Below are positions 94 through 23,998 of a DNA stretch of 64,000 nucleotides, one piece after another. The notes beneath the pieces are model-generated. The model did no database searches, was not told the origin of the DNA, and saw only the letters and a program-made list of their open reading frames with translations. How positions within the stretch are numbered: the first letter of the stretch is position 1; each line of letters starts with the position of its first letter. Both the position numbers and the translations under genes were made by a program. Location of the stretch: positions 173,911-237,910 of IMG/VR virus record IMGVR_UViG_3300028364_000014. The stretch is one strand, 5' to 3'.

Positions 94-121
94 AATATAA
101 TACTTTTTCCTAAGTTGTCAA
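94..121 (-). promoter_or_regulatory. sigma70-like promoter TTGACA-N16-TATATT overlapping the 3' end of the YqeY gene
   Basis: + strand aatata 94-99 and tgtcaa 116-121; same geometry as 13 other copies. Confidence 0.75.
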
Positions 122-550
122 GTAATTATTTTTACTACTAACGCAACGTTCCATAAGCACCAATCTAACTAAGTTCCCATCAGCACTTCCTTTTAGCTCT
201 GACATAATAAAACCCATTGCTTTTATAGGAGTAGCATAAGAATCAAAGTCAACATTATTAAATATCCAACTCTCTATTTCTTTTTCTGTCATCATAGCAG
301 GTATAAAACTTTTCAATATATTTAGGTATTCAGATTTAGATTCATCAACCCCTGAATACTCTAAAACAATGAGCTCTGATTTAATTAACTTAGTAATAAT
401 ACCATTAATGTCGTCTTTAGTTACTTCTTCCCCTTTCTTCTTATTTAACCTAGGAATTTCCCCTAAGATCATCCTCAATGTGTATTTCTTATTAATATCT
501 TTAGCCTTAGTAGCTTTTTTTAGCATCACCTTTAAATCTTTTTCTTTCAT
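110..550 (-). CDS. GatB/YqeY domain protein
   Basis: LRMILGEI...KLIKSE...YLP/FIP-like MMTEKEI...MGFIM...ADG pattern of the YqeY family; 146 aa. Confidence 0.75.
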   Translation of the reverse strand: MKEKDLKVMLKKATKAKDINKKYTLRMILGEIPRLNKKKGEEVTKDDINGIITKLIKSELIVLEYSGVDESKSEYLNILKSFIPAMMTEKEIESWIFNNVDFDSYATPIKAMGFIMSELKGSADGNLVRLVLMERCVSSKNNYLTT

Positions 551-1195: not shown

Positions 1196-1600
1196 CTAAC
1201 TTATTTCTCCTTCATATTGTCCCTCCCCAAAATGGTTTTTGTTTTTAGATCTTCTATGTTTACCGTCCGGAACAGTAGTCCCATCAGTATCTTCAGACGG
1301 TCTATTTCCTGAATCAGCCTCATGAAAATGTTCTTTATTTAAATCAGCGTGATTATTAGTCTCCGCTTGTCTAGAAAATTCCCTCTTACGTATAGAAGGG
1401 TCTGTCATTTCATCTATATCACGCGTAGTTTTATCTACTGGATTCACTTTAGTATTACAATTTCCTCCTACTACTTTTGTATAATCATGTTGTTTTCGTT
1501 GAATACCTGTAGTGTGTTTTCTATTGCCACCAAAATCTCCATCACTAGAATCACTAGATGAATTATTAACTGGATTATCATTAGGACTTAAAAAATTCAT
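1196..1600 (-). CDS. hypothetical hydrophilic, probably disordered protein
   Basis: 134 aa ORF with GGAG RBS; D/N/S/K/R-rich. Confidence 0.55.
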   Translation of the reverse strand: MNFLSPNDNPVNNSSSDSSDGDFGGNRKHTTGIQRKQHDYTKVVGGNCNTKVNPVDKTTRDIDEMTDPSIRKREFSRQAETNNHADLNKEHFHEADSGNRPSEDTDGTTVPDGKHRRSKNKNHFGEGQYEGEIS

Positions 1601-1612
1601 AGTATTACTCCT

Positions 1613-2194
1613 TTATTTTCGTTCTATTATTTCTTTACACCACGATAAATCATCAATAAATTTTTTATAAACTTTGTGCTTAATTCCTCCCAATCTTACT
1701 AGATAAGATGGGTGATAAGTAACTACTATACTTATTTTCTCTGTGAATTTATATCGTTTGCCCCGCATAGAACTAAGAGAAGTAGAAGGTGTTTTATTTA
1801 ATAGGGCTCTGCTTACGTCACCTCCAAGCGCTAGTATAATCATAGGCTCTATAGCATTTATTTGTTCTACTAAATAAGGAAAACAATTATTTATCCATTC
1901 TTCTTCTAATTTAAAACCGGGTTGAATAAAGCATTTAATTAAGTTTGTTATATAAACATCCCGTAAGGATAATTCAGAATCAATTAATGCTTTATCCAAC
2001 AACTTACCCGATCTTCCTATAAAAGGTAATCCAGCTTTATTTGTTATTGTATTTTCATCAGCTCCAGGACACATACCACATATCATTATCTTAGAATATG
2101 GATTTCCTTTAGCAAACACTAAGGATGCACGTGTTTTATATAAATCACATTTTTTACAAAATTTAATTTTTTCTTGTAGCTTGTTTAATTTCAT
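1613..2194 (-). CDS. uracil-DNA glycosylase superfamily protein (family 4-like, Fe-S cysteines) with atypical motif A (GMCPG)
   Basis: CKKC, PFIGRSGKLL, YITNLIKC, later Cys, YHPSY. Confidence 0.85.
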   Translation of the reverse strand: MKLNKLQEKIKFCKKCDLYKTRASLVFAKGNPYSKIMICGMCPGADENTITNKAGLPFIGRSGKLLDKALIDSELSLRDVYITNLIKCFIQPGFKLEEEWINNCFPYLVEQINAIEPMIILALGGDVSRALLNKTPSTSLSSMRGKRYKFTEKISIVVTYHPSYLVRLGGIKHKVYKKFIDDLSWCKEIIERK

Positions 2195-2217
2195 CTTACC
2201 CTACTTATAACAAATAA

Positions 2218-2766
2218 TTAAGAAAAGAATAACCCATAAAAAGGATTAACTAATTTTTCAGGTGTGCTCATATCCATCCAGCCTATTAAAACGCCTTTGT
2301 TTGAAACACATCGTTTGGCCGCGGCTACTAAATCCGCAATCATAGGCAATGTTTCATTAGTAATACGAGAATAACAATCAAGAAAAATAAAATCAAATTT
2401 TTGTTTAGTAGTGTATAGATAAGTAATATAGTTTTCCCTTACAGCGGTTAGCCTTTCATCATAAATTATACCATAATCTACTTGACTGTTTATAATATCT
2501 AAAGACTCTTCAACTACCGTTAATTTTTTCACCTTATTTAAAGATAGAATATATTTAGTAGCAACCCCGAGACCTAAACCTAGTACTAAACAATTACCAA
2601 AAGGCTTACTACTAATTTGCCATATATAGTCACTTAATTCTCGGTCGGAATAAATAAGTTGTTTATCTTGTTCCATGAATAACTCGTTATTCATACTATA
2701 AACTTTAATATTACCGTGTTGTGACACTAAATCACCTTCTATGTAATGAAAACTACCTTGGTCCAT
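2218..2766 (-). CDS. class I SAM-dependent methyltransferase-like protein (spermidine synthase-like fold)
   Basis: LVLGLGLG motif I, TVVE, FDFIFLDCY. Confidence 0.65.
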   Translation of the reverse strand: MDQGSFHYIEGDLVSQHGNIKVYSMNNELFMEQDKQLIYSDRELSDYIWQISSKPFGNCLVLGLGLGVATKYILSLNKVKKLTVVEESLDIINSQVDYGIIYDERLTAVRENYITYLYTTKQKFDFIFLDCYSRITNETLPMIADLVAAAKRCVSNKGVLIGWMDMSTPEKLVNPFYGLFFS

Positions 2767-2797
2767 AACGGTCTCCTACAAGTATTAAATTATATTA

Positions 2798-3157
2798 TTA
2801 AGTGAATTTCATTTCTTTTAGTTTTAAATTATCTGCAAATGTAAAAACTATACGTAACTCAGCACCGTTAGTTAAATCCTCATTATAAACTGTGTATGAC
2901 TCATATACTTCTTTAATTGGATTAAAATATCTGGTGCCCATATTACATTCTTTTGCTACACTCAATAAGTTATCAAGGTACTCATTAACTCGTTCCTTTA
3001 CAGAGAGTTCCCATTGTTCCTCAGAAGTAAGTAAAGCCTCAGTTTCCACAATTTTTTCCTTTTTTTTAGGTGGTATTGTTTTAGCATAGGACTCTTTAAT
3101 TACTTTTTTCTTAGTAATATTCTCAGTATTTGATTCTTTAGATGTAAGTTTTGTCAT
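2798..3157 (-). CDS. hypothetical protein
   Basis: 119 aa ORF within the co-directional gene array. Confidence 0.55.
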   Translation of the reverse strand: MTKLTSKESNTENITKKKVIKESYAKTIPPKKKEKIVETEALLTSEEQWELSVKERVNEYLDNLLSVAKECNMGTRYFNPIKEVYESYTVYNEDLTNGAELRIVFTFADNLKLKEMKFT

Positions 3158-3159
3158 AA

Positions 3160-3654
3160 TTAATTTCCTTTATTGGTTTTATCCAGTAACTTTTTAGCTT
3201 TTTCTGTTTCTTGTTCTTGATCATACACATCTGTAGTCAAACGAACAAGTTTTCTAGCCCATTCCGGATCATCCTCATTTCTTTTTATTTCTTGATAAAA
3301 ATCCTCAATTTCGTGCCCTACAATTTTAGCTTTGTCTTTTTCATCAATATAAATATGCTGCAATTCGTGAGAAATAATTCTTTGTTTGTCTTTTAAACTG
3401 GCTAAATCCCATGCCCTTTTATCTACAAATAAAATATAATCATATCCCTCTTCAGCAGTATTATCAGTAGTAAAAAATTTAATTTTAGCAGAGGCTAGCT
3501 CAATACAAGCTAGTACCATAGCGCCACCGCTCACTTTTTTCTTTAAGTCATAAACTAGTTTAAATTTTAAATAATTATACTGAGGGAATCTTTCAGCTAG
3601 TATATAATAAAATACTTTCTCTAGATCTTCATCCGATGTTTGATATCTTAACAT
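3160..3654 (-). CDS. putative phage metallopeptidase-domain protein
   Basis: HELQH zinc motif followed by GHEIEDF. Confidence 0.65.
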   Translation of the reverse strand: MLRYQTSDEDLEKVFYYILAERFPQYNYLKFKLVYDLKKKVSGGAMVLACIELASAKIKFFTTDNTAEEGYDYILFVDKRAWDLASLKDKQRIISHELQHIYIDEKDKAKIVGHEIEDFYQEIKRNEDDPEWARKLVRLTTDVYDQEQETEKAKKLLDKTNKGN

Positions 3655-3667
3655 AATTTAATACCTT

Positions 3668-3892
3668 TTAATTATTACTTCGTTGATTAAAATGCTCCGC
3701 CAAATTTATCAAACTGTCTGGGGAAGCAGGACCAAATTGTTTATTATTATTTCTATTATTTTTTTTATTACTATTTTTATAATGAGGATTTCCATTACTA
3801 TCGTAACAAATTTTTACTGTTTTGCCATTTTTTAACTTTTTTATTACTATCTTTCCACCGTCTTTTGCACACTCACTAAAATTTTTAACCAT
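3668..3892 (-). CDS. small hypothetical protein
   Basis: 74 aa, AGGAG RBS, C...GG...ICY pattern. Confidence 0.55.
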   Translation of the reverse strand: MVKNFSECAKDGGKIVIKKLKNGKTVKICYDSNGNPHYKNSNKKNNRNNNKQFGPASPDSLINLAEHFNQRSNN

Positions 3893-3955
3893 TTAGTTCT
3901 CCTTAATTAATAATAAAATCTTTTCTTACTGTATAAATATGTTTACTAACAAACC

Positions 3956-5749
3956 TCAAGGAAAATCTATATGGGTTAACTTATTTGCAACCTCAGGTTC
4001 TAACACCCAATAAATTTTAGCTGTATCCGAACTTCCTTTTAGTAATTGAACATTGCCAGTAACTAGTCCACGTTTAATGAGATTAAGTATAGAATCAGCA
4101 CTTTCTGTACAATTATTTGCAAATCCTAATACATTAGTACACTCACCAAATTCATTAAATATAGGTGTTTTTCTTACTCTTAAAATAAACCACTTTGAAT
4201 TACCCTTTTTATGCTCAATGTATCCAGCTTCTATATAATCACAAGGACAGCCTTGATCAATGCAATGCTGATCAGTAATAATACTTATGTCTTTAAATCC
4301 GTGTTCCCTGCCGTTCTTTTTAAACGATTGTAATAACTCTGAGGTAGTTTTACCAACCACTTCTTTACAAGTAGGACCACTTGTTGTTTTAATACCATAA
4401 AAATCTGTACAAAAACTAGAATCTATAAAGGCATATTCAAATTCCTCATTAGCACCGCGCTCTTTATCCCATATATATCCATCCACCGCCTCTGTTAAAA
4501 AATTAATTCTATTATAGGCACTAACCATTTTATTATAATACACTTCTCTATTTAATTTTTCATTCTTTAAATCAGTAATATCTCTTAAATGCTCAATTAC
4601 TTTAACTACTTGACCTTCTTCGTTTAAAATAGGATAAGATCTACAGTCGTACCAACCTTCGAGCCTTTCAATATATCTTTCAAGTTTTTCTGGTTTCTTA
4701 CTTATTTTACACTTAGCTGTTTGGCAGTCATCACAAGGAGCAGTACGACCTATTAACTCATAACACCTACGCTTAACTACAGTAGATTGGTCCTCACCAA
4801 ACATAGCTAAACCGGCTTTATTATAGGCTAATATATTACTATGAGCATCTTGTACACCTATTACATCAGGTATAGCGTCTAATATTCCTTTTATTAGGGC
4901 ACTTGTTTCATCGATTTCTTGTTGTATTAAAACACTCTTCGTAATATCTTGAACTGTACCTACGGATTTTATAGGGCAACCTTCTACAGTATATTCTGTT
5001 TCACACCATCCTACAACATACTTCAAGCGTCCATCAGGCATTGCCAATCTGTATGTAGTAATATAAGGGGTTTTATTGTCTAAAGAATTAATATAGGCAT
5101 CAGATATTTTGTCCCGATCCTCATGATAAACTGATGTTACAAACATACTCCATAAATTTATAGAAGTGTCTTCTTCTACTTCAAATATTTTATACATTTC
5201 ATCTGACCATATTAATTTACCGGGACATGCACCTTCTTTCCAAACATTATTTGGTGCAAGCAAAGACCAGCTACCTATCAAAGCCATTCTTTGTGATTCA
5301 GCTAGTAGATACGACATATCTTGAATTTTTGTATCCGCCTGTCTAATTTTAGTTATATCCTCAATAATAAACATATAACCAATTGTTACATCTCTGTCAT
5401 CCTTTATAGTAGACTTAGTCATATTAAACCATTTATTTATAGCTTGAATATAAAAGGAATCAAATGTATGTGGCTTGTTAATAGCAGGCTCAATTATTTC
5501 ACACTCTTCAGTTATAATTTGATTATTATATAAACCACTTAATTTTTTATTTATGAGTTCTTTTTGGGGGATATCTAAAAAAGCTAAGAAGGGTTTATTA
5601 ACAAATTTAATTTTACAAGAAGGATTAACAATGCAAATAAATTCCTTTACTGAATCGAATGCATATTTCCAGGAATCAGTCTGGTCTTTTAGATAACCAT
5701 TAGTAGTTAGAGTTCTAGTTAGATCTCTAAGTTTATTTAATTCATCCAT
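3956..5749 (-). CDS. multi-PAS/PAC domain protein with no recognisable output domain
   Basis: PAS-like segments at about aa 25-135, 150-270 (IGSW...WSDEMYKIF...VYHEDR...YRL..PDG..KYV), 285-395 (ILDAIPDVIGVQD...YN...G..CY) and a divergent fourth. Confidence 0.85.
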   Translation of the reverse strand: MDELNKLRDLTRTLTTNGYLKDQTDSWKYAFDSVKEFICIVNPSCKIKFVNKPFLAFLDIPQKELINKKLSGLYNNQIITEECEIIEPAINKPHTFDSFYIQAINKWFNMTKSTIKDDRDVTIGYMFIIEDITKIRQADTKIQDMSYLLAESQRMALIGSWSLLAPNNVWKEGACPGKLIWSDEMYKIFEVEEDTSINLWSMFVTSVYHEDRDKISDAYINSLDNKTPYITTYRLAMPDGRLKYVVGWCETEYTVEGCPIKSVGTVQDITKSVLIQQEIDETSALIKGILDAIPDVIGVQDAHSNILAYNKAGLAMFGEDQSTVVKRRCYELIGRTAPCDDCQTAKCKISKKPEKLERYIERLEGWYDCRSYPILNEEGQVVKVIEHLRDITDLKNEKLNREVYYNKMVSAYNRINFLTEAVDGYIWDKERGANEEFEYAFIDSSFCTDFYGIKTTSGPTCKEVVGKTTSELLQSFKKNGREHGFKDISIITDQHCIDQGCPCDYIEAGYIEHKKGNSKWFILRVRKTPIFNEFGECTNVLGFANNCTESADSILNLIKRGLVTGNVQLLKGSSDTAKIYWVLEPEVANKLTHIDFP

Positions 5750-5755
5750 TTTTAT

Positions 5756-6247
5756 CTAAGCTCCTATCCAAGCTTTAATTGCATCTTTAAAGACCATTAA
5801 CACCCCCGTAGCCATTACTCCTAACAAAGAAGTTACACCTATAGTAATCATAGCTATATAAGCGGTCAATTTAGTGCCTATTGCCGTTTGATTAATCGAT
5901 AATACATCCACTTTATTATCCAAACATTTAAAATCCTCTTTACAAAAAACATTTAATTGCCTTTCTACAGCCCTTATTATACATTGTAACCTAGTTTCTA
6001 ATTTTTCTAACTCTTTAGAACTAATAGCCGCATTAGCTTTCAAATCCAGTAAAAGATCTTCTTTAAGTTTTATAAGTTCTTGATGGATTTTATCTCTGTC
6101 TTTTTGTGATTGTCTAGAAGTTTCAGCTATCTGCTCATGAAGCCTATTAAGGGTTTCAAATACATAAGAAAACCATTGTTTTTTCATAATCTCGGCTTCT
6201 TCTAAATGCATGTGCACAATTGGATCAGAGAAATGATCTTCCCTCAT
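5756..6247 (-). CDS. coiled-coil protein with one C-terminal transmembrane helix (holin/XhlA-like architecture)
   Basis: Heptad-rich N-terminus; hydrophobic LTAYIAMITIGVTSLLGVMATGVLMVF. Confidence 0.55.
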   Translation of the reverse strand: MREDHFSDPIVHMHLEEAEIMKKQWFSYVFETLNRLHEQIAETSRQSQKDRDKIHQELIKLKEDLLLDLKANAAISSKELEKLETRLQCIIRAVERQLNVFCKEDFKCLDNKVDVLSINQTAIGTKLTAYIAMITIGVTSLLGVMATGVLMVFKDAIKAWIGA

Positions 6248-6263
6248 TACAGGTTATTTCCCC

Positions 6264-6464
6264 TTATGATTTGATTAACTTCTTACCACAACAGGGACAA
6301 AACGACATGGGTATACAGTATCTACTCACGTGAGTTATCCCGTCCTGGTCTTCTAGGTGTGTCCATTGAATATACCATTTATTAACGTCTGGATACCAAT
6401 AAAAAACCTCACTATAGTTTCTAACATAAGACTCAAAAATCTCACAACAAAAAGCATGTTTCAT
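6264..6464 (-). CDS. small Cys-containing hypothetical protein
   Basis: 66 aa with CC and FCPCCG. Confidence 0.55.
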   Translation of the reverse strand: MKHAFCCEIFESYVRNYSEVFYWYPDVNKWYIQWTHLEDQDGITHVSRYCIPMSFCPCCGKKLIKS

Positions 6465-6486
6465 TTTTTTTTAATCCTTAATTATA

Positions 6487-7026
6487 TTAATGTACACTTC
6501 CTCCACCAACATAAGGAGTAAAATCGTATTTGCCACCTAGAGAACGCCAACCTTCAGTAGGCCAATTCTTACCGGCAACCATACCACTTATAGTAACATT
6601 AGTATCCATAACATCAAAGCCAGGAAGTTCCATAGTAGCTCCAGTAGTACCAGACCCGCTAACAGTAGTAGCTGACAAACCTAGTCTAAAAAACTGGTCA
6701 TCTCTAACTCTATTTATTGTAGAGCCAACTATATAAGGATTATGATCAACATTGATCGCCCTACCACCAATATTTTGACCCATCCCAGTATCCTCCGTAA
6801 TAACATTGTGATCTAACAAGTTATCTTTTGATTCAAAATCAAGAACTGTTCTGGTATAATCCGCACCCATCCTATCTCCAACATTTAATGCGCCAAAATT
6901 AGCAATCTTTGAATCGAAAGTACGCCTGATAGAAGTACTTGTATCGGTTCTAGCAACACCAGACGCCGTAAGTTCAACCTCACTAACTCCTGTAGCATCT
7001 ATTTGATAAAAATCATACTCACTCAT
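6487..7026 (-). CDS. hypothetical, possibly structural protein with three T[AVI]SG motifs
   Basis: 179 aa, AGGAG RBS, G/T/D/S-rich. Confidence 0.55.
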   Translation of the reverse strand: MSEYDFYQIDATGVSEVELTASGVARTDTSTSIRRTFDSKIANFGALNVGDRMGADYTRTVLDFESKDNLLDHNVITEDTGMGQNIGGRAINVDHNPYIVGSTINRVRDDQFFRLGLSATTVSGSGTTGATMELPGFDVMDTNVTISGMVAGKNWPTEGWRSLGGKYDFTPYVGGGSVH

Positions 7027-7106
7027 AATATTTCTCCTTTATATTTTTTAATGAGGGCTACTCCCTCTATATATAGTATAGTACATAAAACAATAAATCT
7101 CAGATT

Positions 7107-8078
7107 TTATTTAAAATTATACAGTCTTACTTTAACTTTACTATTATTTAATAAAAATTCTGAGTTATCATCATAAAAGGTTACACCGGTTACTACCACT
7201 TCTGAAATGCCGGCGTTAATTATCTTAATAATGCATCTAAAACACGGTATTCCGCAACTTAAATAAAGAGTAGCTCCTTTAGTAGCTATACCATGCCAAG
7301 CAGCATTCAAGATTGCATTTTCTTCTGCATGACCTGCTATACATATGTCCAACATCTCACCGGATTTAGCGCCCATAGAGTGTCTAGGGCATATTGGATT
7401 ACATGGATCAATAGGTTTAATTACCTTATCTTTGTACTTATTTATAAAATTAGAATCTAACTCCCATCTACGCTCACAGCTTGGTATCCCTCTAGGAGGT
7501 CCATTATATCCAGTACTTACTATACTTTTATCTTTAACTAGGACAGCCCCTATTCGTCTAGATAAACACTTAGAATGTCTTGCTGCTTGTCTACACACAT
7601 TAAAAAAATACTCATCCCAGTTTTTAACTGGAGGGTCGGTAATAGAATAAACATCTACTGGGTTATTTAATAATTTATCCTTATCTTCATCAGTAACCAA
7701 CTCAACCGGTAAATGTAGCTTCTGAGCAGTAACTTCTGCTACAAAATCCCTACGTTTTTGTATAAAAGCACTAATACCTGTTACTTTAGTCATTATTAAA
7801 TATTTCAAAGTTAATGATAGTATAAATTTATCCAAAATTTCTTTGTCATCATGTAATCTTTCAATTAAAGTATCTTTAATTTCATTATAAGCTTCAGTAA
7901 AAGAATACCCTACTTCTTTTGATACTTTTAATATATTAGCTACGTCAATTATAACAGTAGAATCAAAAGTTAATATAAAACTATCGATTTTTTTTAAAGT
8001 TCTTTCTGTTACTGGACCTTTAAAATACTTATGAAATAAGGTCTTAAAAAAATCATCTAAAATTAATTGGTTTATCAT
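7107..8078 (-). CDS. dCMP deaminase with ~145-aa N-terminal extension
   Basis: WDEYF, SKCLSRRIGAVLV, GYNGPPRG, HAEENA, PCFRC. Confidence 0.85.
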   Translation of the reverse strand: MINQLILDDFFKTLFHKYFKGPVTERTLKKIDSFILTFDSTVIIDVANILKVSKEVGYSFTEAYNEIKDTLIERLHDDKEILDKFILSLTLKYLIMTKVTGISAFIQKRRDFVAEVTAQKLHLPVELVTDEDKDKLLNNPVDVYSITDPPVKNWDEYFFNVCRQAARHSKCLSRRIGAVLVKDKSIVSTGYNGPPRGIPSCERRWELDSNFINKYKDKVIKPIDPCNPICPRHSMGAKSGEMLDICIAGHAEENAILNAAWHGIATKGATLYLSCGIPCFRCIIKIINAGISEVVVTGVTFYDDNSEFLLNNSKVKVRLYNFK

Positions 8079-8091
8079 CTACTACTTATCC

Positions 8092-8346
8092 TTAAGTTAT
8101 ATTATTATCAATAATTATTGGCCAATAATAATCTACATCATTATTATCTTTACCTAGTCTTATTCTTTCTTCTTCCGTATCATACTGCATAATCTTGAGT
8201 CTTTTTTTATCGTTACATATTGGGCAAGTAATATCTAACACCATAATCAAACTACCTGACCTTGGTCTGAAGATACACTCCCCCTGTACTCCACAATCAC
8301 ATGAGTATTTAATCGTGTCGCCGTCTGTTTTAATTATTTTTAGCAT
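8092..8346 (-). CDS. small Zn-finger-like protein
   Basis: CDC ... CPIC. Confidence 0.5.
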   Translation of the reverse strand: MLKIIKTDGDTIKYSCDCGVQGECIFRPRSGSLIMVLDITCPICNDKKRLKIMQYDTEEERIRLGKDNNDVDYYWPIIIDNNIT

Positions 8347-9618
8347 TTAAAATCCTTTTTCATCTATTACAATATCTTTAGGTAACTTATCTTCATGTTT
8401 TTTACTATAAGATGGAAACTGGTAAGCCCCTGTAGGAAATCTTTGTGAATAGGAAATCTCTATAACACACGGTAGTTCCCAATAATCTATTTCGCATTCA
8501 CCTTGTTTAATTTTTAGCCCTGAACCTACTCTACCTAGAGGAATTATCTTACCTACCTGATTATATTTACCTATTAAAAGACTACCGACTTTACCTTGTT
8601 TAGCACCAGTACCTTCCTTCCAATCATAAGCTACAACATCATCTTCTTTAACAGCTTTTACCTTCCAACATGCCCTTCTTGTGGGTTTTCCTGTGTAGGT
8701 AATTTCTGCATTCTCATGAGCGTGCCAAAGAACTAATCCTTCATATTGCATTTTATTTTTATCTACCCACCCATATGCCTCATTATACGAATCAAATAGT
8801 TTCTCTTTGGGTAGTATTACAGAACTATTAGCTATTAAACTTTTTGTAAGAAATCCTAACGAATCCTCATAATTTTCTTCTGTAAAGTCCTCTCTATCTG
8901 AAAACAACACATTAAAAACTACAGCTATAACTTTATGTTTTTCCTGCAAAGCTAGTGATGTTTTAATATCTTCCTTCAATTCACCATTTAAAGTGTCAGA
9001 TTTAGAGATACTTTGCATCAACTTAAACCCTTCCATATGGGATATTTTTAACTCAGGATCGATTACAAATTCAGCAATCAATAAGGTATTATACGGCAAT
9101 TTCATATCTTCTATGGTTTTTACAATGTTTAAGTACTTTTTAGTATGGTCATTAATACGTCTAGTATATATTTTAACTTCTCCTATAGAAGTTACTAAAA
9201 TATAATGACACAAACCATTATATTTTAAAAAAAACCTTGCTAACTTATCCTTAATCAATTTATTACATTTTGTTTTAGAAATACTTGTATTAGGTTTAGA
9301 ACAACAAAACTGGACAGGTAAATTATTAAAATCCATTTGATTATTATTTAAGTCTGGTAAATCATCTAAAGATTTAGCTATTTGTAACCCTTCCTTTAAT
9401 CTAGTTTCAATTAATCTAGTATAGTCAGCTTTAGCAGCCTCATCTGGGTTAAGTTCATTAGCTTTACCTCTATTAATGTAGCCATAGGTATGAAAGGTGG
9501 TTTGAATTTTTCCACCAACTAGTCCCCACTTACGGGTAATTGTATCACCAACCAATGTTAAAATGACAAATTTTACTCTCCCAGTAGAGTGATTTTGTAC
9601 TAAAATTATTTCTTCCAT
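8347..9618 (-). CDS. ATP-dependent DNA ligase with N-terminal WGR domain
   Basis: RKWGLVGG (WGR-like), KYNG motif I, YEGLVL, WKVK, OB-fold GRVGSG. Confidence 0.8.
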   Translation of the reverse strand: MEEIILVQNHSTGRVKFVILTLVGDTITRKWGLVGGKIQTTFHTYGYINRGKANELNPDEAAKADYTRLIETRLKEGLQIAKSLDDLPDLNNNQMDFNNLPVQFCCSKPNTSISKTKCNKLIKDKLARFFLKYNGLCHYILVTSIGEVKIYTRRINDHTKKYLNIVKTIEDMKLPYNTLLIAEFVIDPELKISHMEGFKLMQSISKSDTLNGELKEDIKTSLALQEKHKVIAVVFNVLFSDREDFTEENYEDSLGFLTKSLIANSSVILPKEKLFDSYNEAYGWVDKNKMQYEGLVLWHAHENAEITYTGKPTRRACWKVKAVKEDDVVAYDWKEGTGAKQGKVGSLLIGKYNQVGKIIPLGRVGSGLKIKQGECEIDYWELPCVIEISYSQRFPTGAYQFPSYSKKHEDKLPKDIVIDEKGF

Positions 9619-9654
9619 TTTATAGCTCCTTTAATTTTCCTCAATCTTACACAT

Positions 9655-9682
9655 AATATAGTACATTTTATGGATTTGTCAA
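9655..9682 (-). promoter_or_regulatory. promoter TTGACA-N16-TATATT; the HNH stop codon TGA lies inside the -35 box
   Basis: aatata 9655-9660, tgtcaa 9677-9682. Confidence 0.8.
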
Positions 9683-10542
9683 GTAAATATTTGATCCTTA
9701 ACACATCTAAGTTCATAATACCCACAACCAGGGAGCTTGTGTACGTCCTTATGACATGTTTTGCATAAAGTAATGGTGTTAGCCACATCATTTCCTAAAC
9801 GTGGATTCTGGGTGTATCCTTCGATGTGATGGCAATGAAGCGGAGCTTCCTTTTGGATGGCTCCGCAAATTTGGCACTTCCAGTTGTCACGCTCAAAACA
9901 CATTTGTCTAACTAGAGGATTAACTTCGCGGGATGATGCAGGTTTGAATTCTTTAGGCCATAATTTTTGATTATACACAGGACAAGCTTCTTTACAATTA
10001 TCTGAACAGTATAATGAACATTCACCTTCCATCTGTCCTTTAATTGTTTTAATTCTTGAACTTACTTCTATATTTGTAGGTATAAAGTATTTACCACAGT
10101 ACCTACATTTAACTTCTAAAGAGATACCATCTTTAGAAAGTCTGGGTGACTCATCAACAGTGAGTTTATCTTTATAAGTTTTATAAATAGCAAAATTATT
10201 ATTGTATTCAATACTTCGTGCTTTTATTACTTCTTTATTCATTTCTTTATATATTTTATTTTGTTTGTTTATTTTTATTTTATTATGTGTTCTATATTTA
10301 TATTTTCTACTGCTTATTTCTTTTTTATTGTTATTATAATATTCTTTGTGTTGTTTATTTATTTTTTCTTTGTTATTTTGATAATATAATTTCATAAATA
10401 AAGAGTGTTCTTTTTTATTATTATAATAATAACCTTTCTTACAGTCTTTACATATTGTATAAATACCATCTTTGGAATTCTTATCCTTACTGAACTCACT
10501 AGAATCTTTAACTTCTTTACATTTTGTACACATTTTTTCCAT
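9679..10542 (-). CDS. HNH homing endonuclease (paralog of 48087-48938 and 15369-16394)
   Basis: CTKC..CTICKDC N-terminus; C-terminal CQIC...LHCHHI...N..TLCKTCHKDVH. Confidence 0.85.
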   Translation of the reverse strand: MEKMCTKCKEVKDSSEFSKDKNSKDGIYTICKDCKKGYYYNNKKEHSLFMKLYYQNNKEKINKQHKEYYNNNKKEISSRKYKYRTHNKIKINKQNKIYKEMNKEVIKARSIEYNNNFAIYKTYKDKLTVDESPRLSKDGISLEVKCRYCGKYFIPTNIEVSSRIKTIKGQMEGECSLYCSDNCKEACPVYNQKLWPKEFKPASSREVNPLVRQMCFERDNWKCQICGAIQKEAPLHCHHIEGYTQNPRLGNDVANTITLCKTCHKDVHKLPGCGYYELRCVKDQIFT

Positions 10543-10595
10543 GTAATTTCTCCTTATAAGATATCTAGTTACTCCACTATCTATAAGAAAGTTAG

Positions 10596-10757
10596 TTAAC
10601 TATCACTAAAAATAGGGTAAAGTTCTTGCATAATAACTATTAAATCATCTTGCATTTTTAGTTCCTCTATATTAGACCAACCCATACCATCACTTATAAT
10701 TACCACAGTGTAATCGTCGTAAGGTTCAAGACTTTTTATTAATTCTTTTTTTGTCAT
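10596..10757 (-). CDS. small hypothetical protein (53 aa, not in the ORF track)
   Basis: MTKKELIKSLEPYDDYTVVIISDGMGWSNIE...; fills the gap and starts 3 nt after the upstream stop. Confidence 0.6.
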   Translation of the reverse strand: MTKKELIKSLEPYDDYTVVIISDGMGWSNIEELKMQDDLIVIMQELYPIFSDS

Positions 10758-10759
10758 AC

Positions 10760-11536
10760 TTATTCCTTATAATTAGATGTAATATAATCATACATAATTT
10801 CTTCTACTAGTTTTTCAACTTTTTCTGTCTCTGGTTTTTCTGGTAAATCACACTTTTGATAAATTTCTTTGGTTTTTTCAAATAACATATCTGATTCACT
10901 TTTAACTTCGTCTAGAGTCCATTTACCATTCTTAATATCAATAAGTTCCTGAGAATCTTTAGTTCTATAAACAGTTAACTCGCCTGTGTCTAAGAACTCA
11001 TAACCCATACGAAGTAACCTAATACTATGACTTGCCATTTTTGAATCGTAACCTACTTTATCGACCAACCTCTTTCTTTTAGCCCCCATATAACCTTCAA
11101 ATTTTAACTTATTAACCCTTGCTAGTTGCCCATGAGCATAACCTACATAAGCATTGTACGCTCTCTTAGACGAGAATAAATCCCTATTATTTAGCAAAGC
11201 CTTACCATAAATATTTGTTTTTAAATAGTGGTCTTTGTGCAACCACAAAATAGGCATTACATTAGGGTTAGATTTTAATAACATACTTATCATTTTTTTA
11301 AATTCATAATGAACTACGTCATATTGTCCTATAAAACTTTCTTGTACCTCTTTAATTTTTCCTAAACCAAGATACTCTAATACGGGAGCAAAGTATACAC
11401 CCATAAGGTCAACATCATCAGAGCTGTTTGGTTGGTCAGGAGGTATAAACGTATTGTGGGAAACACTTCCTCTATATGTTGCCAATAAAGTTCTATCATT
11501 GAACATCTCCAACATCTTTTCTTTCTCTCCCATCAT
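10760..11536 (-). CDS. DNA pol beta-superfamily nucleotidyltransferase (RlaP / T4 NrdC.11-like)
   Basis: YRGSVSH...SDDVDLMGVY, KSNPN, YVGYAHGQ, YDSKMASHSIRLL. Confidence 0.8.
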   Translation of the reverse strand: MMGEKEKMLEMFNDRTLLATYRGSVSHNTFIPPDQPNSSDDVDLMGVYFAPVLEYLGLGKIKEVQESFIGQYDVVHYEFKKMISMLLKSNPNVMPILWLHKDHYLKTNIYGKALLNNRDLFSSKRAYNAYVGYAHGQLARVNKLKFEGYMGAKRKRLVDKVGYDSKMASHSIRLLRMGYEFLDTGELTVYRTKDSQELIDIKNGKWTLDEVKSESDMLFEKTKEIYQKCDLPEKPETEKVEKLVEEIMYDYITSNYKE

Positions 11537-11849
11537 TAATCACCTGTAATCCTTTACTATCTATTTTAAACCCATTATCCCTAGCCGCAAAAAACCGTGA
11601 GGTATGTTTAGATTTTTTTAAATTAGTAACATAATCAATTTTATCTTGAGACATTGCACTAGAACCAAAGAACAGTCCTTCGGGGTCATTTCTATAATCC
11701 CACACGCCTCCTAAACTTTCTGAACCATCTTCTTCAATAATTACTTCCAAAGCAAGACCCACGGGGTGAAAAAACTGTCTGTTAGCTTCTTGTAAAAACC
11801 CTAATTCTCTAAACTCCTTTATATTCATTCTTTTAATATCTTCGGGCAT
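11496..11849 (-). CDS. hypothetical protein
   Basis: 117 aa; LQEANRQFFHPVGLAL motif familiar from phage proteins. Confidence 0.6.
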   Translation of the reverse strand: MPEDIKRMNIKEFRELGFLQEANRQFFHPVGLALEVIIEEDGSESLGGVWDYRNDPEGLFFGSSAMSQDKIDYVTNLKKSKHTSRFFAARDNGFKIDSKGLQVINDGRERKDVGDVQ

Positions 11850-17455: not shown

Positions 17456-20400
17456 CTAACTACACCCAGCATATCCACAAGAGGGACAAGTAAAGCATCC
17501 ACTCTGAAATATAATGTCTTTAGATCCGCAATCTGGGCAGGACATACCCAGTTCTCCATTTAAATCTGTTACATAGCCCATAAGGTGTTTTTTTAATCTA
17601 AAAACAAGAGTGCCTGGTCCAGCATTGTCTACTCCACCTAACGCCTTAACAATGTCAATCATAGGAGTATTATGACGAAAAAGAAACCCAAGCATACGTC
17701 CTATTTTTACATGATTAGATTGTCTAGCAAACTTCTTTTCTACCTCTTCTAATTTCTCATCATCTAATTTATATTTTTTAGCTACTTTTTTTAACTCATC
17801 AATTGCATCCATAGTTATTTCTGTCTTAGAAACAGTGTTTGTTGAAATAAAACACGCAAATGGTTTTCTCATCTCAATATCCATAAATGAAAAATGTACG
17901 TACCATTTAGAACCATTACCACGTAAAATGACCCCTTTGGATGGGTACTCTTCAGGAAGTTTAACAACATCATGTATAATATTACCATTTTCATGTCCCT
18001 TAAAAGCATCCAAAAACTCTTCTTGCCTTTCTTTAATCTCTTTAACCTTATCTTTCTTTTTAGACTCAAGAACAGCTATAGAAGTACCTTCACGATAAGT
18101 AGTACACCCTTTAATTCCTTGCTTATGGACCTTACTATACAACGCTTTAAAATCATCAAAAGATATGTCATTGGGTAAGTTGATCGTTTTACTACTTGAC
18201 TGATCAATATACTTACTTACAGTATTCAAAATAGTAAAATGTTCTTGTACAGACAGCTTTGTAGCGGTAGTAAATTCAGTTTTGCCGTGCTTCAAAGCCT
18301 GATAATATCCATAATCTCTAATAGTTTCAGCTTTACATAATCCTTGATTCTTATCTATTCTATATTCACCATCTGTAGATATAAGAACAATTTCATCAGC
18401 AATACTTTCTTCTTTTAAATAATCTGTTTCAAACCATTCTCCTTTATGTATAGATGGGTATTTAAAATCCATAGGCTTTCCTTCTATCCTATTCCATCTA
18501 GTATACTCTGTAGAAAATACTGGTTCTAACCCACCAGATACATTGCCAGCAAGAATTGCTAGAGTACCAGTAGGAGCTATAGCAGCAACGGCACTATTAC
18601 GTAAACCGTATTTTCTAATAAGGTCGAGTGTCTCCTCGTCTAAAACTTCCCCATGTTTCACATAACCAGTCTCTAATAATTTTTCATCATAAAGGGCAAA
18701 AGGACCCCTTTCTTTAGCAAGCATGGCGGACTTTTTATATGCGGTATTCATAAACAAATGGAGCATCCATTCTGTAAACTCAACACTTTCTTTTCCACCA
18801 TAACGAATGCCCATCATCATAAACAAAGAAGCTAGTCCACAAAAACCAAGACCAATCTTTCGTTTCATCTTAGAAGCATCTTCATACATAGGCAATGGGT
18901 AATCTGATATGTCGATTATATTATCTAAAGCTTCAACCATAATATTTATATCTAACATAAGAAGTTGGTCATTAAATATACCTGTTTCAATGTCGTAGTA
19001 ACGCACCAAATTTAAGGACCCTAAATTACATACATCACCAAGGTCGTACAAAGCCCCTTTGTGTTCTACAATACCGGTGTTTCCGGGTACTTCTCCACAT
19101 TGTCTGGTACTAAACCCATTACAAATAACAGAGTGATAATCTTCTTGGGTTAAACAATACACATCTTCTTTTCCTATAAACTCTATTGCCTTAATTTTTT
19201 CATAGAATTTTTGTTTGTGTATAATTTTGTCTTCTTTCCAAGAAAAAAACTTATCATTTTTATACGGAAGCATGAATCCTATTTGGCTCATAAAACTATC
19301 TCTACTACCGCTAAAAAGTATCAACTCATAATTATCTTTACACCAATATTTCTTTAGCCCTCCCAGTCCATCAGGAAGTTTTCTATAGTCAGCTTTTCTA
19401 CGTAAGTTAATATTAGATCTAATACCAAAATTAGATAGTAAAATTTGTACATCTTTAATTAGGCTTGGCATAGAACTATTTAATCTAATAGAACAACCTG
19501 ACCTAATAGAACTAATGTTCACAGTACCGTCCGCCTGAAATAACCCCTGAAGATACCCTTTTACAAAATCCTTAGTTCCCTTAAATATAAATTCTGGGAC
19601 TTCTTCTTTAATAGACAATAAACCAAACTCTTCAAAAATTCTGTAAAGAACCGCTGATTTAATCTCATACATATCTTTACTCTTAATATAACGAGCTTTT
19701 ACTGTAGTATCTGAATAGTGTCCTCCGTATTCTCTTATCAAAGTATTAGTGGTCTCTACAAGTTCATCTATTAATACATTATCTTTCCCCCACAATCTAA
19801 TGTAAACTTTATTATTCTTACAATTGTATTTTTTATCCCAACCTTCGTATATAGTACCATCACCTGCTATTATTCCTATAAGTCTCCCAAAAGATAAATT
19901 ACCGTTCTTCCCAAAACCACATAACCCAGAACAAATATCTACGCTATCCCCAACCTTAAGGTCCTTTAATTCTTTTGGACCTTCGGGGGTATTAAACTCG
20001 TGGTAATCTGTAGTTTTAATTTCATATCCCGCAGAAGTAGTCAATTTAAATACATCTCTATCTTCACCAGTCTTATATACATGAGTAGTCTTTAGCAGTG
20101 TGGTGCCTATAGAACCATCTATTTGTCTATTATCAGCATAAACCTCATTAGACCCACCTTCTTTATACAAGTCATATATACGCTCCATACCTTTAGATGT
20201 ATGTAATAACATGTCTCCTGTAAAACAAGGATTAGTTGCGCTAATACTACTACTCAAGTAATTAACATTATCCATTTTTCTAATTGTGTCAATAAACAAT
20301 AACCCTGGTTCATTTCTATTATAACTACTCTTCAAAAGAAGTTCCCACAAATAATTAGCTTTTACTGTACGATATACTACAGTAGGATAACCTTTATCTG

Positions 20401-22926: not shown

Positions 22927-23998
22927 ATCGTCTATACAATAGCGCTTGATACCAAGACTTATGCCAGTTCCTGTCTGTATTTGCTTTAGAGTTACAAGAA
23001 CGGCACACCGTAATTAAATTACTAGGCTTGCAGTTCTTTTTATTATAATCAATGTGGTGAATTGTTAGGTCGTTTTTATTCGATGAATTACAATATGGAT
23101 TCAAACATTTATTATCATCCCTATTTCTTATATCCTGTTTGTATTCTTTGTCTTTCCAGGCTTCACAATAAGGTTCGAAGGATTTTCCACCTTGCCAATT
23201 AGGGTGCCCTGAACCACATCTAGTTATTGATAGGTTTATACCTTTACAGGTAGGGCACCTATAACCAGTTCTCCAATTACCCCAAGTAATACTATGTCCG
23301 TGCCCTTCAGAACAAACATACTCAAGTTTAATATGTGCATTTTCATACTTTTTACTTAATAAGATATAACCTTCTTTTTTAAACTCCTCTTTTATATATT
23401 CAATTGTTTTTTTATTATTACCAACACAATAAGGACATCTACAACCTGATACCCAATCCCTATAAGTGATACTATGAGAGTGCTTATTAGGACATATGTA
23501 ATCAAGTTTAGTACTGCTATTTTTATACTCCTCACTCAGAAGAATGTACCCCTCTTTTTCTAAAGAATTCCTAACTGTATCAAAACTCGGCTTCAAGTTA
23601 CCATGACAGTAGTAACAACGGTTTCCCGAAGCCCAATCATCCCATCTTATTGAGTGTTTATGCCCTTTAGGACAAATATATTCTAGTTTTTGTTTATTAT
23701 TTTTATAAACAGTAGTTAATAAAGTGTACCCTTCATTATAGAAAGCCTCTCTTATCTTATCTAATGACAGTTTTCTCTTATCGAAGTTACAAAACCTACA
23801 CCTATGTCCTAATAACCAATTACCCCAAGTAATACTATGATAATGACCTCTGGGACACCTATAATCAAGTTTGTTGGTATACCCCTCGTATTCAGTACTA
23901 AGTAAGGTGTATCCTTCTTTTTTAAAATACTCTTTAATGAGTGTAATATTGTACTTCTTATTAGCCATACTATTCCTGGGGTGCACCACATTTAGCAC
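22910..23998 (-). CDS. Zn-ribbon-repeat HNH endonuclease (4 repeats)
   Basis: Same repeat and C-terminal nuclease domain as 21134-22345. Confidence 0.85.
   Translation of the reverse strand: MLNVVHPRNSMANKKYNITLIKEYFKKEGYTLLSTEYEGYTNKLDYRCPRGHYHSITWGNWLLGHRCRFCNFDKRKLSLDKIREAFYNEGYTLLTTVYKNNKQKLEYICPKGHKHSIRWDDWASGNRCYYCHGNLKPSFDTVRNSLEKEGYILLSEEYKNSSTKLDYICPNKHSHSITYRDWVSGCRCPYCVGNNKKTIEYIKEEFKKEGYILLSKKYENAHIKLEYVCSEGHGHSITWGNWRTGYRCPTCKGINLSITRCGSGHPNWQGGKSFEPYCEAWKDKEYKQDIRNRDDNKCLNPYCNSSNKNDLTIHHIDYNKKNCKPSNLITVCRSCNSKANTDRNWHKSWYQALLYRRYDYRY

Follow-up and report, generated by a model that had tools for sequence, protein, structure and literature searches.

Few mechanisms are known by which phages sense conditions inside the host; examples are the arbitrium peptides, the VqmA/DPO receptor and T4 lysis inhibition. 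VqmA of phage VP882 is a phage-encoded PAS receptor with one PAS domain plus a helix-turn-helix, acts on transcription and links a sensed signal to the decision to lyse. In T4, the antiholins RI and RIII act on the holin T; RI senses superinfection in the periplasm, and RIII is a small cytoplasmic protein without a sensor domain. PAS domains without a fused effector occur in stand-alone proteins such as the short LOV proteins PpSB1-LOV, PpSB2-LOV and SBW25-LOV, while tandem-PAS sensor histidine kinases (FixL, ArcB, CckA-like) carry DHp and catalytic domains. The sigma-54 activator OrpR of Desulfovibrio vulgaris Hildenborough contains a [4Fe-4S]-binding PAS domain (PMC8359166).

To determine how a PAS protein encoded by a lake phage compares with these systems, a window of 64,000 nucleotides was analysed, comprising bases 173911-237910 of the 237,910-bp IMG/VR virus record IMGVR_UViG_3300028364_000014. 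The record carries a terminase, and the window carries RNR, PolA, DnaB, ligase and dCMP deaminase. All frames are open under table 11, and no alternative genetic code was needed. An earlier note, made from the sequence alone, had described a protein of three clear and one divergent PAS repeats without an output domain, encoded beside a holin-like, single-TM membrane protein, and this observation held on re-examination except for the label holin-like, which is not an observation. The PAS protein (P0001, 597 aa) is encoded 6 nt (5750-5755) downstream of the gene for the membrane protein (P0002, 163 aa). The features of the locus are collected in Table 1.

Table 1. Features of the PAS gene locus; positions are those of the 64,000-nucleotide window
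Position	Strand	Residues	Feature
3956..5749	-	597 aa	Gene for the four-PAS sensor P0001 (fourth PAS predicted)
5345..5749	-	aa 1-135	N-terminal cap helix plus PAS1; specific to the jumbo-phage clade; aa 1-50 are the best-conserved stretch
4946..5269	-	aa 161-268	PAS2, PAS_3 type; an exchangeable insert that differs from the PAS2 of most relatives
4565..4897	-	aa 285-395	PAS3, the Cys-motif PAS shared with bacterial kinases, sigma-54 activators and HD-GYP proteins
4709..4765	-		Cys motif C329-Y-E331-x7-C339-x2-C342-x4-C347, a putative Fe-S or metal/redox site
4109..4489	-	aa 421-547	PAS4 (predicted fold), divergent and Cys/His-rich; core of the family-defining C-terminal module
3959..4108	-	aa 548-597	C-terminal tail: a helix, a beta-hairpin with YW and a disordered end LTHIDFP (predicted structure)
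5756..6247	-	163 aa	Gene for the tail-anchored membrane protein P0002: conserved N-terminus, helical stalk of variable length, C-terminal TM and an FKDAIKAWIGA end
5786..5869	-	aa 127-154 of P0002	Single transmembrane helix (Kyte-Doolittle scan)
5761..5764	-		GGAG Shine-Dalgarno-like motif inside the last codons of the upstream gene, 11 nt before the PAS start codon; suggests coupled translation
6264..7026	-	66 aa and 179 aa	Two conserved upstream neighbours of unknown function, a Cys-rich protein (6264-6464) and a second protein (6487-7026), completing a syntenic four-gene block

To examine the domain composition of P0001, the protein was compared with Pfam and NCBIfam profiles. Pfam matches were found for PAS at aa 31-132 (E 4.7e-10, 39.9 bits), PAS_3 at aa 179-266 (1.5e-9, 38.4 bits) and PAS_4/PAS_9 at aa 290-395 (about 1e-22; 77.3 and 80.2 bits), all above the curated cut-offs, and TIGR00229 matched with 59.3 bits. 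The fourth PAS domain had only a weak PAS_9 match (aa about 455-549, E 0.02). However, an AF2 model of aa 396-597 (pLDDT 86.6) showed a PAS fold, a five-stranded antiparallel sheet flanked by helices, which matched LOV/PAS structures in Foldseek (E about 1e-5) and over 40 PAS structures in VIA (Z 8-10.9). The four PAS domains are joined by long helices. The earlier note had named the discovery of a C-terminal output domain as grounds for refutation, and no HisKA, HATPase_c, GGDEF, EAL, HD or HTH domain was detected in P0001 by Pfam or NCBIfam. The linker helices carry no H-box, and no HisKA or HATPase was found anywhere in the phage record. Thus, P0001 is a tandem-PAS protein without a canonical output.

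To test the designation of P0002 as holin-like, the protein was compared with Pfam and PHROGs. Only weak coiled-coil-type or unknown-function matches were obtained, no holin family matched, and its look-alikes in a protein atlas are viral hypothetical proteins. A hydropathy scan revealed one hydrophobic helix close to the C-terminus (peak 2.04), which is conserved in an alignment (A3). In this phage the pair lies in the DNA-metabolism block, and the only endolysin-like gene found, a candidate SLT endolysin with an N-terminal TM, is 75 kb away; in two distant phages described below, an architecturally equivalent small protein directly follows the endolysin, so that the criterion of a small membrane protein encoded beside the endolysin gave a mixed answer for P0002. 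The two genes upstream of P0002 had no family matches. A scan of positions 3000-8400 for promoters and terminators gave matches no more frequent than in shuffled sequence, and no operon boundaries were drawn. These data do not support the label holin-like.

The earlier note had also specified that a recent, decaying host fragment without conserved synteny would contradict its reading, and had proposed to examine synteny of the pair in other huge phages. About 25 full-length homologues (33-41% identity), with conserved length and C-terminal end, sit in the same place in related jumbo phages. In 8 related jumbo-phage loci the context is collinear, a gene equivalent to P0002 lies directly upstream of the PAS gene, and the pair sits between dCMP deaminase/ligase and metallopeptidase/UDG genes; homologues of the next two upstream genes are in the same order in most of the related jumbo loci examined. 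The dN/dS ratio was about 0.07 for the closest pair (loci L011 and L012), although synonymous sites are near saturation. Mean pairwise identity was 0.71 for aa 1-50, and PAS1 is present in every architecture of the clade, including the 330-aa forms. In contrast, PAS2 is only 12% identical to the relatives' PAS2 and is absent in the 470-aa and 330-aa forms. The phage occurs in lake-water and salt-lake metagenomes, but no RNA run holds it, and expression was not checked. The condition of a decaying host fragment without synteny is clearly not fulfilled.

PAS3 is 45-55% identical to about 90 bacterial PAS domains. It keeps an invariant Cys-x9-Cys-x2-Cys motif with Glu at +2: C329, C339 and C342 are invariant in 17 phage homologues and in all bacterial matches tallied, and many sensors named as coming from anaerobes share the motif. 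The motif resembles that of the [4Fe-4S]-binding PAS of OrpR (PMC8359166), and redox sensing is therefore plausible, although no cofactor was assayed. The phage PAS3 domains form one clade (SH-aLRT 99), separate from all sampled bacterial copies. The nearest host kinase homologues had been suggested in advance as a means to reveal the host; this was rejected, because the phage PAS3 clade is deep and equidistant from many phyla.

To extend these findings, the C-terminal 200 aa were examined separately. A word search with this region found only the phage family, and a profile search was needed to see the wider family: among 1.84 billion representatives it returned 427 proteins. In every listed hit that covered most of the module, it lay at or near the C-terminus of proteins of about 170-1230 aa, behind zero to about seven PAS/GAF sensors. 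Ten hits were scanned and carry only PAS and GAF domains, with no canonical output domain. P0001 aa 400-597 aligned over its full length with 27 diverse members, with a G-Y-x-W-x-K start, TD-x-HC...C-x-Y-I-E, a V-x-K-T-P strand, a helix, a YW hairpin and a tail that ends in FP or LPR in many distant members. W427, K429, E507, K527 and P529 are invariant in this alignment, and C447, H495, C496 and C503 are conserved. In the jumbo clade, the 330-349-aa forms keep only PAS1 and this module. However, some members of about 390-406 aa (for example at locus L008) lack the module but keep the membrane neighbour, so that in that clade PAS1, rather than the module, might be the contact. The description of P0001 as having no output domain therefore needs rewording: the C-terminal 200 aa form the family-defining module and are probably the docking or output part.

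This family, which we term PAS-tail, is undescribed and was found here only in phage-like metagenomic contigs. A tblastn search of GenBank phages with five family members (P0001, P0131, the P0140 module, P0169 and P0136) found nothing, and no cultured representative was found by BLAST. Pattern scans of 185,579 species genomes with two alignments (A2 and A6) found no relative, which is weak evidence of absence, since the method depends on its patterns. Searches for further viral loci with the single proteins P0153, P0160 and P0146 gave nothing, and the context sample stayed at nine distant loci. A literature search found no paper on phage PAS-only proteins or on this pairing; only the OrpR paper was of use. 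An alignment of the family (A4) and the gene pairing now provide a concrete definition for several hundred representative metagenomic proteins; those for which a label was seen are called only "PAS domain" or "hypothetical".

To determine whether the gene pairing recurs, the nine unrelated phage contexts were compared. In 6 of 9 (loci L014, L016, L020, L021, L022/23 and L026) the gene directly upstream again encodes a small tail-anchored, single-TM protein, and a single-pass or membrane protein is adjacent in L015, L018/19 and L024. The background rate of such tail-anchored genes in the lake phage is 7 of 344, giving a probability of about 6e-9 for at least 6 of 9. Homology between the jumbo-clade membrane proteins and the small ones is not shown, as hhalign gave a probability of 14% over the TM region only; they share architecture. 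In four of seven informative contexts, endolysin or holin genes lie within about four genes. In L016 an endolysin (phrog_894, 1e-13) and a holin (phrog_3427, 8e-31) are followed by a 68-aa TM protein and a 231-aa PAS-tail protein, and in L020 an endolysin (2e-15) is followed by a 70-aa TM protein and a 236-aa PAS-tail protein. L024 has a GH108 endolysin, with a weak holin match on the directly upstream membrane protein, and in L015 an SLT endolysin-like gene is two genes away. In L022/23 the pair lies between the portal and MuF genes, so the lysis association is not universal. The contexts of L016, L020, L024 and L015 lend indirect support to the idea of lysis timing.

The interpretation in the earlier note, that the protein senses host redox or metabolic state and acts by protein contact, for example on lysis timing or as a decoy of host kinases, was partly supported. 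As a real, conserved, phage-encoded tandem-PAS protein without a canonical output, P0001 most likely acts by protein contact, whereas the decoy idea was not supported, since the parts kept throughout the family are phage-specific and PAS2 and PAS3, which resemble those of bacterial kinases, are optional inserts. In our reading, to which we assign a probability of roughly 0.45, P0001 is the long, four-PAS member of a family of cytoplasmic sensors and would be made together with P0002, whose helical part would be cytoplasmic, to form a membrane-tethered sensing unit. The PAS or GAF inputs would read the infected cell's redox, metal or metabolite state, and the C-terminal module would pass this on by protein contact at the membrane rather than by catalysis. 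The most likely process under control would be the timing of lysis, with the pair acting as a holin partner or antiholin-like regulator. The analysis itself established the domain anatomy, the lack of a canonical output, the conservation and purifying selection, the recurrent gene pairing and the lysis-gene neighbourhood in several small phages; binding between the two proteins, the cofactor, the signal and the controlled process are inferred, and binding, cofactor and function are all untested. A complex prediction, the modelling test put forward in the earlier note, was run once for P0001 with P0002 using their own alignments; it gave an ipSAE of 0.00 without controls and is evidence neither for nor against binding. 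Against this reading stand the lack of direct evidence of binding, the location of the pair among DNA-metabolism genes in this phage and its jumbo relatives, the lack of a holin-family match for P0002, the unproven homology between the jumbo-clade and the small membrane proteins, the jumbo-clade members that lack the module but keep the membrane neighbour, the difference in Cys spacing from OrpR, and a lysis association that is not universal and rests on only seven informative contexts.

A bolder version, which we consider doubtful, is that the pair is the founding example of a widespread, phage-only sensor-gated lysis switch, in which the tail-anchored protein is a holin-like or antiholin-like element whose activity is set by a partner that docks through the PAS-tail module and reads oxygen, redox, metal or metabolite signals through freely exchangeable PAS and GAF inputs. 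Uncultured phages could then time lysis to the physiological state of the host. More generally, the family suggests another route for sensing conditions inside the host, with a modular set of inputs bolted onto one phage-specific C-terminal module that is paired with a membrane protein. If the pair gates lysis or another membrane event in response to redox or metabolite state, it would explain how phages of stratified lakes and other changeable habitats match their life cycle to host physiology, and would provide a natural, swappable sensor-to-membrane switch.

The strongest alternative, although unlikely, is that the membrane-tethered pair controls something other than lysis, such as a switch in replication or nucleotide metabolism, superinfection exclusion or host takeover at the membrane. 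This is consistent with its place in the early/middle DNA-metabolism block of jumbo phages, with its position in the head-morphogenesis block in L022/23 and with the absence of a lysis gene nearby in the window. However, no neighbour suggests a specific alternative target, and the four lysis-associated contexts speak against it. Less likely still is a modulator or decoy of host two-component signalling, in which the PAS array would heterodimerise with host PAS-containing kinases, sigma-54 activators or HD-GYP enzymes and a phage receiver would drain phosphate. In its favour are the similarity of PAS3 to bacterial signalling proteins and a stand-alone receiver in the phage record, with the acidic pocket and the phospho-acceptor Asp but no HisKA, HATPase or Hpt in the record; in relatives, the receiver gene lies four genes downstream of the PAS gene. 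However, the 330-aa forms and single-module members lack PAS2 and PAS3, the only parts resembling bacterial proteins, the PAS3 clade is old and not a recent host copy, the conserved membrane partner is not explained, and the receiver is 147 kb away in this phage and was not seen in distant contexts.

An accessory input to a phage-encoded phosphorelay, in which the PAS protein would regulate a phage hybrid histidine kinase and the receiver-only protein, is improbable. A related 189-kb phage record (G002) encodes a 947-aa hybrid kinase with a solute-binding domain, a PAS_3 domain, DHp/CA and a receiver, and the clade also carries receiver-only genes. However, no kinase was found in the window's own record (87% complete) or in two other records, G001 and G003, which are incomplete; the kinase gene is far from the PAS gene; P0001 has no His-phosphotransfer helix; and small phages with the pair show no two-component genes in the flanks read. 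A ligand-gated transcription factor like VqmA, with the C-terminal tail binding DNA, is very improbable, since the VqmA match (VIA Z 10.9; also listed by Foldseek) is barely above plain PAS domains (Z 10.5), the modelled tail is not a helix-turn-helix, and no DNA-binding family matches. A recently captured, decaying fragment of a host sensor kinase, suggested only by the PAS2-PAS3-like segments shared with bacterial kinases, is contradicted by the full-length conservation, the synteny, the monophyly of phage PAS3, the dN/dS ratio and the phage-specific C-terminal module.

Comparison with the described systems shows what is shared and what is different in each case. As in OrpR, PAS3 has three cysteines, invariant in PAS3, within 14 residues and an acidic residue two positions after the first, at the same place in the PAS fold, and sigma-54 activators with an N-terminal PAS carrying the exact motif of the window (C50, C60 and C63) are among the bacterial hits. 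The spacing is C-x9-C-x2-C in P0001 and C-x8-C-x3-C in OrpR (C52/C61/C65, with an acidic residue at 54), a difference of one residue; the OrpR sequence was not aligned and cluster binding was not measured, which does not settle whether PAS3 is an OrpR-type sensor. P0001 has no AAA+ or DNA-binding output. Phage VP882 VqmA (PDB 7dwm), likewise a phage-encoded PAS receptor, is the top structural match of the C-terminal module at about 11% sequence identity, but P0001 has four PAS domains, no DNA-binding domain and a membrane-protein partner. The short LOV proteins, the best Foldseek matches of the C-terminal model, share a PAS core flanked by an N-cap and a C-terminal helix without a fused effector. 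However, the similarity is of fold only, identity is 12-18%, no flavin-binding motif of the GXNCRFLQ type with its adduct-forming Cys is present in P0001, and the hairpin and FP tail, the Cys/His cluster and the tandem array are not features of short LOV proteins. The proposed logic resembles that of T4 RI and RIII, in that a small phage protein, or pair of proteins, binds a membrane lysis protein and delays or gates lysis in response to a signal; there is no sequence or fold relation, and here the sensor is a PAS array and the membrane protein is tail-anchored. The comparison with RI and RIII was not tested in this analysis. Finally, as in the dimeric sensors of tandem-PAS histidine kinases, the PAS domains are linked by long helices with the DIT junction motif, and PAS2-PAS3 is 30-40% identical to such proteins, but the DHp and catalytic domains are absent and the C-terminal module takes the place of the kinase core.

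To determine whether the tandem-PAS gene and its neighbor are genuine, the two open reading frames were translated and compared with domain libraries. The ORF for the PAS protein (P0001) begins with ATG, lies on the minus strand and is separated by 6 nt from the ORF for the membrane protein (P0002). A GGAG lies inside the last codons of the upstream gene, 11 nt before the PAS start codon, which suggests coupled translation. No alternative genetic code was needed. Pfam identified three PAS domains above its curated cut-offs, at aa 31-132, 179-266 and 290-395, and NCBIfam added only the generic PAS S-box model and partial matches to the PAS regions of kinases and cyclases. The presence of a C-terminal output domain would have counted against the earlier note, but no HisKA, HATPase_c, GGDEF, EAL, HD or DNA-binding family matched the protein. 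The one divergent PAS repeat described in that note is also real. A weak PAS_9 match was found at about aa 455-549 (E 0.02), and an AlphaFold2 model of aa 396-597, built on 25 homologues, had a pLDDT of 86.6 and a PAS fold. This model matched LOV/PAS structures at E about 1e-5 by Foldseek and gave Z scores of 8-10.9 against more than 40 PAS structures by VIA-align. The full-length model (pLDDT 69.9) showed four PAS cores joined by long helices at aa 133-159, 270-292 and 392-419, the usual layout of dimeric tandem-PAS sensors. P0002 is helical, with one hydrophobic helix at aa 127-154 followed by ten residues. Thus, what the note reported seeing, three clear and one divergent PAS repeats without a canonical output domain beside a membrane protein gene, is confirmed.

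The 64-kb window is the last part of a 237,910-bp IMG/VR virus record that CheckV rates 87% complete. All large ORFs in the window lie on one strand, and the GC content is about 32%. The window carries genes for RNR, family-A DNA polymerase, DnaB helicase, DNA ligase and dCMP deaminase, and the record carries a terminase. Three genes of the window appear to be interrupted by homing-endonuclease inteins: the RNR large subunit has Intein_splicing plus LAGLIDADG_3 at about aa 311-671, the family-A DNA polymerase has the same at about aa 467-869, and a Polysacc_synt_2/epimerase gene has a LAGLIDADG insert at aa 218-288. The window also encodes a YqeY-like protein, an RlaP (RNA-repair pathway DNA polymerase beta family) nucleotidyltransferase and, among large unannotated genes (622, 728 and 400 aa) at its end, a protein with a SPRY domain (aa 434-549). 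The same DNA occurs in lake-water and salt-lake metagenomes from 24 studies, and no RNA run was found to contain it.

Coordinates of the genes discussed, in the window, in the whole phage record (G000) and in related phage loci (L numbers)
Sequence	Coordinates	Strand	Feature	Length
Window	110-550	-	YqeY-like protein	
Window	3668-3892	-	Small gene directly after the PAS gene	74 aa
Window	3956-5749	-	PAS protein, P0001	597 aa
Window	5756-6247	-	Membrane protein, P0002	163 aa
Window	10760-11536	-	RlaP nucleotidyltransferase	
Window	17456-21124	-	RNR large subunit with apparent intein	
Window	23970-27200	-	Family-A DNA polymerase with apparent intein	
Window	29955-32045	-	Polysacc_synt_2/epimerase gene with LAGLIDADG insert	
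Window	58570-60498	-	SPRY-domain protein	642 aa
G000:C1, outside the window (L003)	30437-30814	-	Stand-alone response-regulator receiver	125 aa
G000:C1, outside the window (L013)	102392-103165	+	SLT lytic transglycosylase	257 aa
L029 (related phage record G002, bases about 8716-11559)	1217-4060	+	Hybrid histidine kinase	947 aa
L001	12388-14196		Tail-sheath-like gene	roughly 602 aa
L017	159-1798		bAvd plus reverse transcriptase (RVT_1)	
L015	4576-5091		Second small PAS protein	171 aa
L015	6718-7317		Guanylate-cyclase-domain protein	199 aa

To examine whether the gene is a decaying host fragment without conserved synteny, the outcome that the note had said would overturn it, homologues and their gene neighborhoods were compared. 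A word search found about 25 proteins of 588-597 aa that align over the whole length at 33-41% identity, on contigs of up to 313 kb, and their ends are conserved down to the last residues (LTHLDFP). Eight related jumbo-phage loci (L001, L002, L007, L008, L010, L011, L012 and L017) showed the same gene order: ligase, a small gene and then dCMP deaminase (in most); a protein of about 175 aa, a protein of about 70 aa and then the membrane protein; the PAS protein; and HSP20 or a small gene, a phage metallopeptidase and onward to UDG. Most relatives carry the HSP20 small heat-shock gene directly after the PAS gene, where this phage has only a small gene, and a Pfam "putative phage metallopeptidase" gene follows in all of them. 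In L017, bAvd plus a reverse transcriptase (RVT_1), the hallmark of a diversity-generating retroelement, lie a few genes upstream of the ligase-to-PAS block. A tree of 120 PAS3 domains placed all 33 phage copies on one side of a branch with SH-aLRT 99, which points to one old acquisition and not a recent capture. For the closest pair with DNA sequence (L011 and L012), dN/dS was about 0.07, a rough figure because synonymous sites are near saturation. The gene is not a decaying host fragment.

To identify which parts of the protein are constant, architectures were compared within the jumbo clade. The 590-aa form is PAS1-PAS2-PAS3-PAS4-tail, the 470-aa form lacks PAS2, the 715-aa form has extra PAS domains, the 330-349-aa forms consist of PAS1 plus PAS4-tail only, and the forms of about 390-406 aa are PAS1-PAS2-PAS3 without PAS4-tail. 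In P0001, PAS2 is a PAS_3-type domain that is only 12% identical to the PAS2 of most relatives, so it has been exchanged.

The C-terminal 200 residues define the family. A profile of aa 396-597, scored against 1.84 billion representative proteins, gave 427 hits at E up to 1e-3 and 72 at E up to 1e-10. Beyond the jumbo clade, the best hits fell into two groups: proteins of about 170-250 aa that consist of little more than this module, and proteins of 330-1230 aa in which the module lies at or near the C-terminus. Ten of these were scanned with Pfam and carried only PAS and GAF domains in front of the module, with no kinase, cyclase or DNA-binding domain. An alignment of 28 diverse modules showed invariant W427, K429, E507, K527 and P529, a frequent FC...C..TD.HC...C.YIE cluster of Cys and His, a KTP strand, a helix, a YW hairpin, and a short tail that very often ends in FP, FPR or LPR. 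The ESM Atlas contains clusters of about 233-aa proteins with this shape, which are labelled viral where taxa are recorded. Look-alikes in BFVD were "PAS domain" proteins of uncultured Caudovirales, uncharacterised proteins of Cellulophaga phages phi19:1 and phi18:3, and a multi-sensor protein of Agrobacterium phage Atu_ph07; with TM-scores of 0.43-0.50, these are leads only. BLAST of five members against 50,697 GenBank phage records found nothing, and neither did pattern scans of 185,579 species genomes. Thus, the protein has no canonical output, but its C-terminus is a distinct module, found here only in phage contexts, that sits where an output domain would be.

Synteny of the gene pair in other huge phages had been proposed in the note as a check, and the upstream gene was examined within and beyond the jumbo clade. 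In the jumbo clade, the upstream protein has a conserved N-terminus (HLQESE..QKQWFTYVF), a helical stalk of variable length, and a conserved C-terminal TM helix with an FKDAIKAWLG end. In six of nine contexts outside that clade (L014, L016, L020, L021, L022/23 and L026), the gene directly upstream encodes a protein of 62-86 aa with a helical N-terminal part and a single TM helix at the extreme C-terminus, and it often overlaps the PAS-tail gene or sits a few bases from it. In the other three (L015, L018/19 and L024/25), an adjacent gene encodes a single-pass or multi-pass membrane protein. By the same criterion, only 7 of 344 genes of the window's own phage are tail-anchored, and six of nine by chance has a probability of about 6e-9. 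A profile comparison did not establish homology between the long and short membrane proteins (14% probability). What is conserved is the arrangement.

To examine which process the pair might control, genes flanking the distant family members were annotated. In L016, an endolysin (phrog_894, 1e-13) and a holin (GTA_holin_3TM, 4e-17; phrog_3427, 8e-31) are followed by a 68-aa TM protein and a 231-aa PAS-tail protein. In L020, an endolysin (phrog_894, 2e-15) is followed by a 70-aa TM protein and a 236-aa PAS-tail protein, preceded by small membrane and lipoprotein-like genes. In L024/25, the directly upstream membrane protein has a weak holin match (phrog_199, 5e-5), and a GH108 endolysin lies four genes away. 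In L015, an SLT endolysin-like gene lies two genes from the 638-aa GAF-PAS member; a YqeY-like gene also appears near this member, and the second small PAS protein and the guanylate-cyclase-domain protein encoded on the same contig hint at nucleotide second-messenger signalling in that phage. In L018/19, a weak M23 peptidase match lies two genes downstream. Against a link with lysis, L022/23 place the pair between the portal and MuF genes, and the jumbo clade places it among DNA-metabolism genes. In the window's own phage, the only endolysin-like gene found, after three endolysin families were searched, is 75 kb away and encodes an SLT protein with an N-terminal TM helix, which resembles a signal-anchor-release endolysin. 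Lysis control is therefore the best-supported guess, and it rests only on gene neighborhood.

Two-component parts of the phage were also sought. The record has one receiver-only gene, between the terminase large subunit gene and a 659-aa gene, which has the acidic pocket and the phospho-acceptor Asp, but no HisKA, HATPase or Hpt was found in the record. In relatives, the receiver homologue lies four genes downstream of the PAS gene and is followed by a tail-sheath-like gene (phrog_15433, 2e-69). This gene occupies the same place in L001, L002, L007, L008, L010-L012 and L017, although one small gene intervenes in L007 and L017 has no receiver. A DNA-metabolism block is an odd place for a structural gene, and BLAST found no homologue of it in the window's own record. 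One related 189-kb jumbo phage (record G002) encodes a complete hybrid histidine kinase with a solute-binding-protein domain, a PAS_3 domain, DHp/CA and a receiver, whereas none was found in the window's own record. These facts keep alive two rival readings, that the protein is a decoy in host signalling or that it serves a phage phosphorelay, but they do not explain the conserved module or the membrane partner.

Collectively, the finding is real and more than a lone PAS protein, but its function is unproven. The anatomy of the protein, its conservation and its pairing with a membrane protein are well supported, whereas the mechanism and the controlled process are inferred. The overall mechanism, a membrane-tethered sensor acting by contact, is given a confidence of 0.45, and a specific role in lysis timing is a possibility that we consider more doubtful. 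The interpretation offered in the earlier note, a sensor acting by protein contact on lysis timing or as a decoy of host kinases, is supported only in part.

PAS3 is the only part of the protein that is close to bacterial proteins. It is 45-55% identical to a PAS domain found in about 90 kinases, sigma-54 activators and HD-GYP proteins, and where those proteins are named, many come from anaerobes. PAS3 keeps the motif C329-Y-E-x7-C339-x2-C342, usually followed by C347, and the three cysteines are invariant in the phage family and in every bacterial match tallied. The internal spacing of this motif differs by one residue from that of OrpR, an activator of Desulfovibrio vulgaris, and OrpR itself was not aligned. 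The resemblance is a lead and not a membership. OrpR binds a redox-sensitive [4Fe-4S] cluster through three PAS cysteines (C52, C61 and C65), with an acidic residue at position 54 (PMC8359166), and the motif of P0001 sits at the same place and has the acidic residue.
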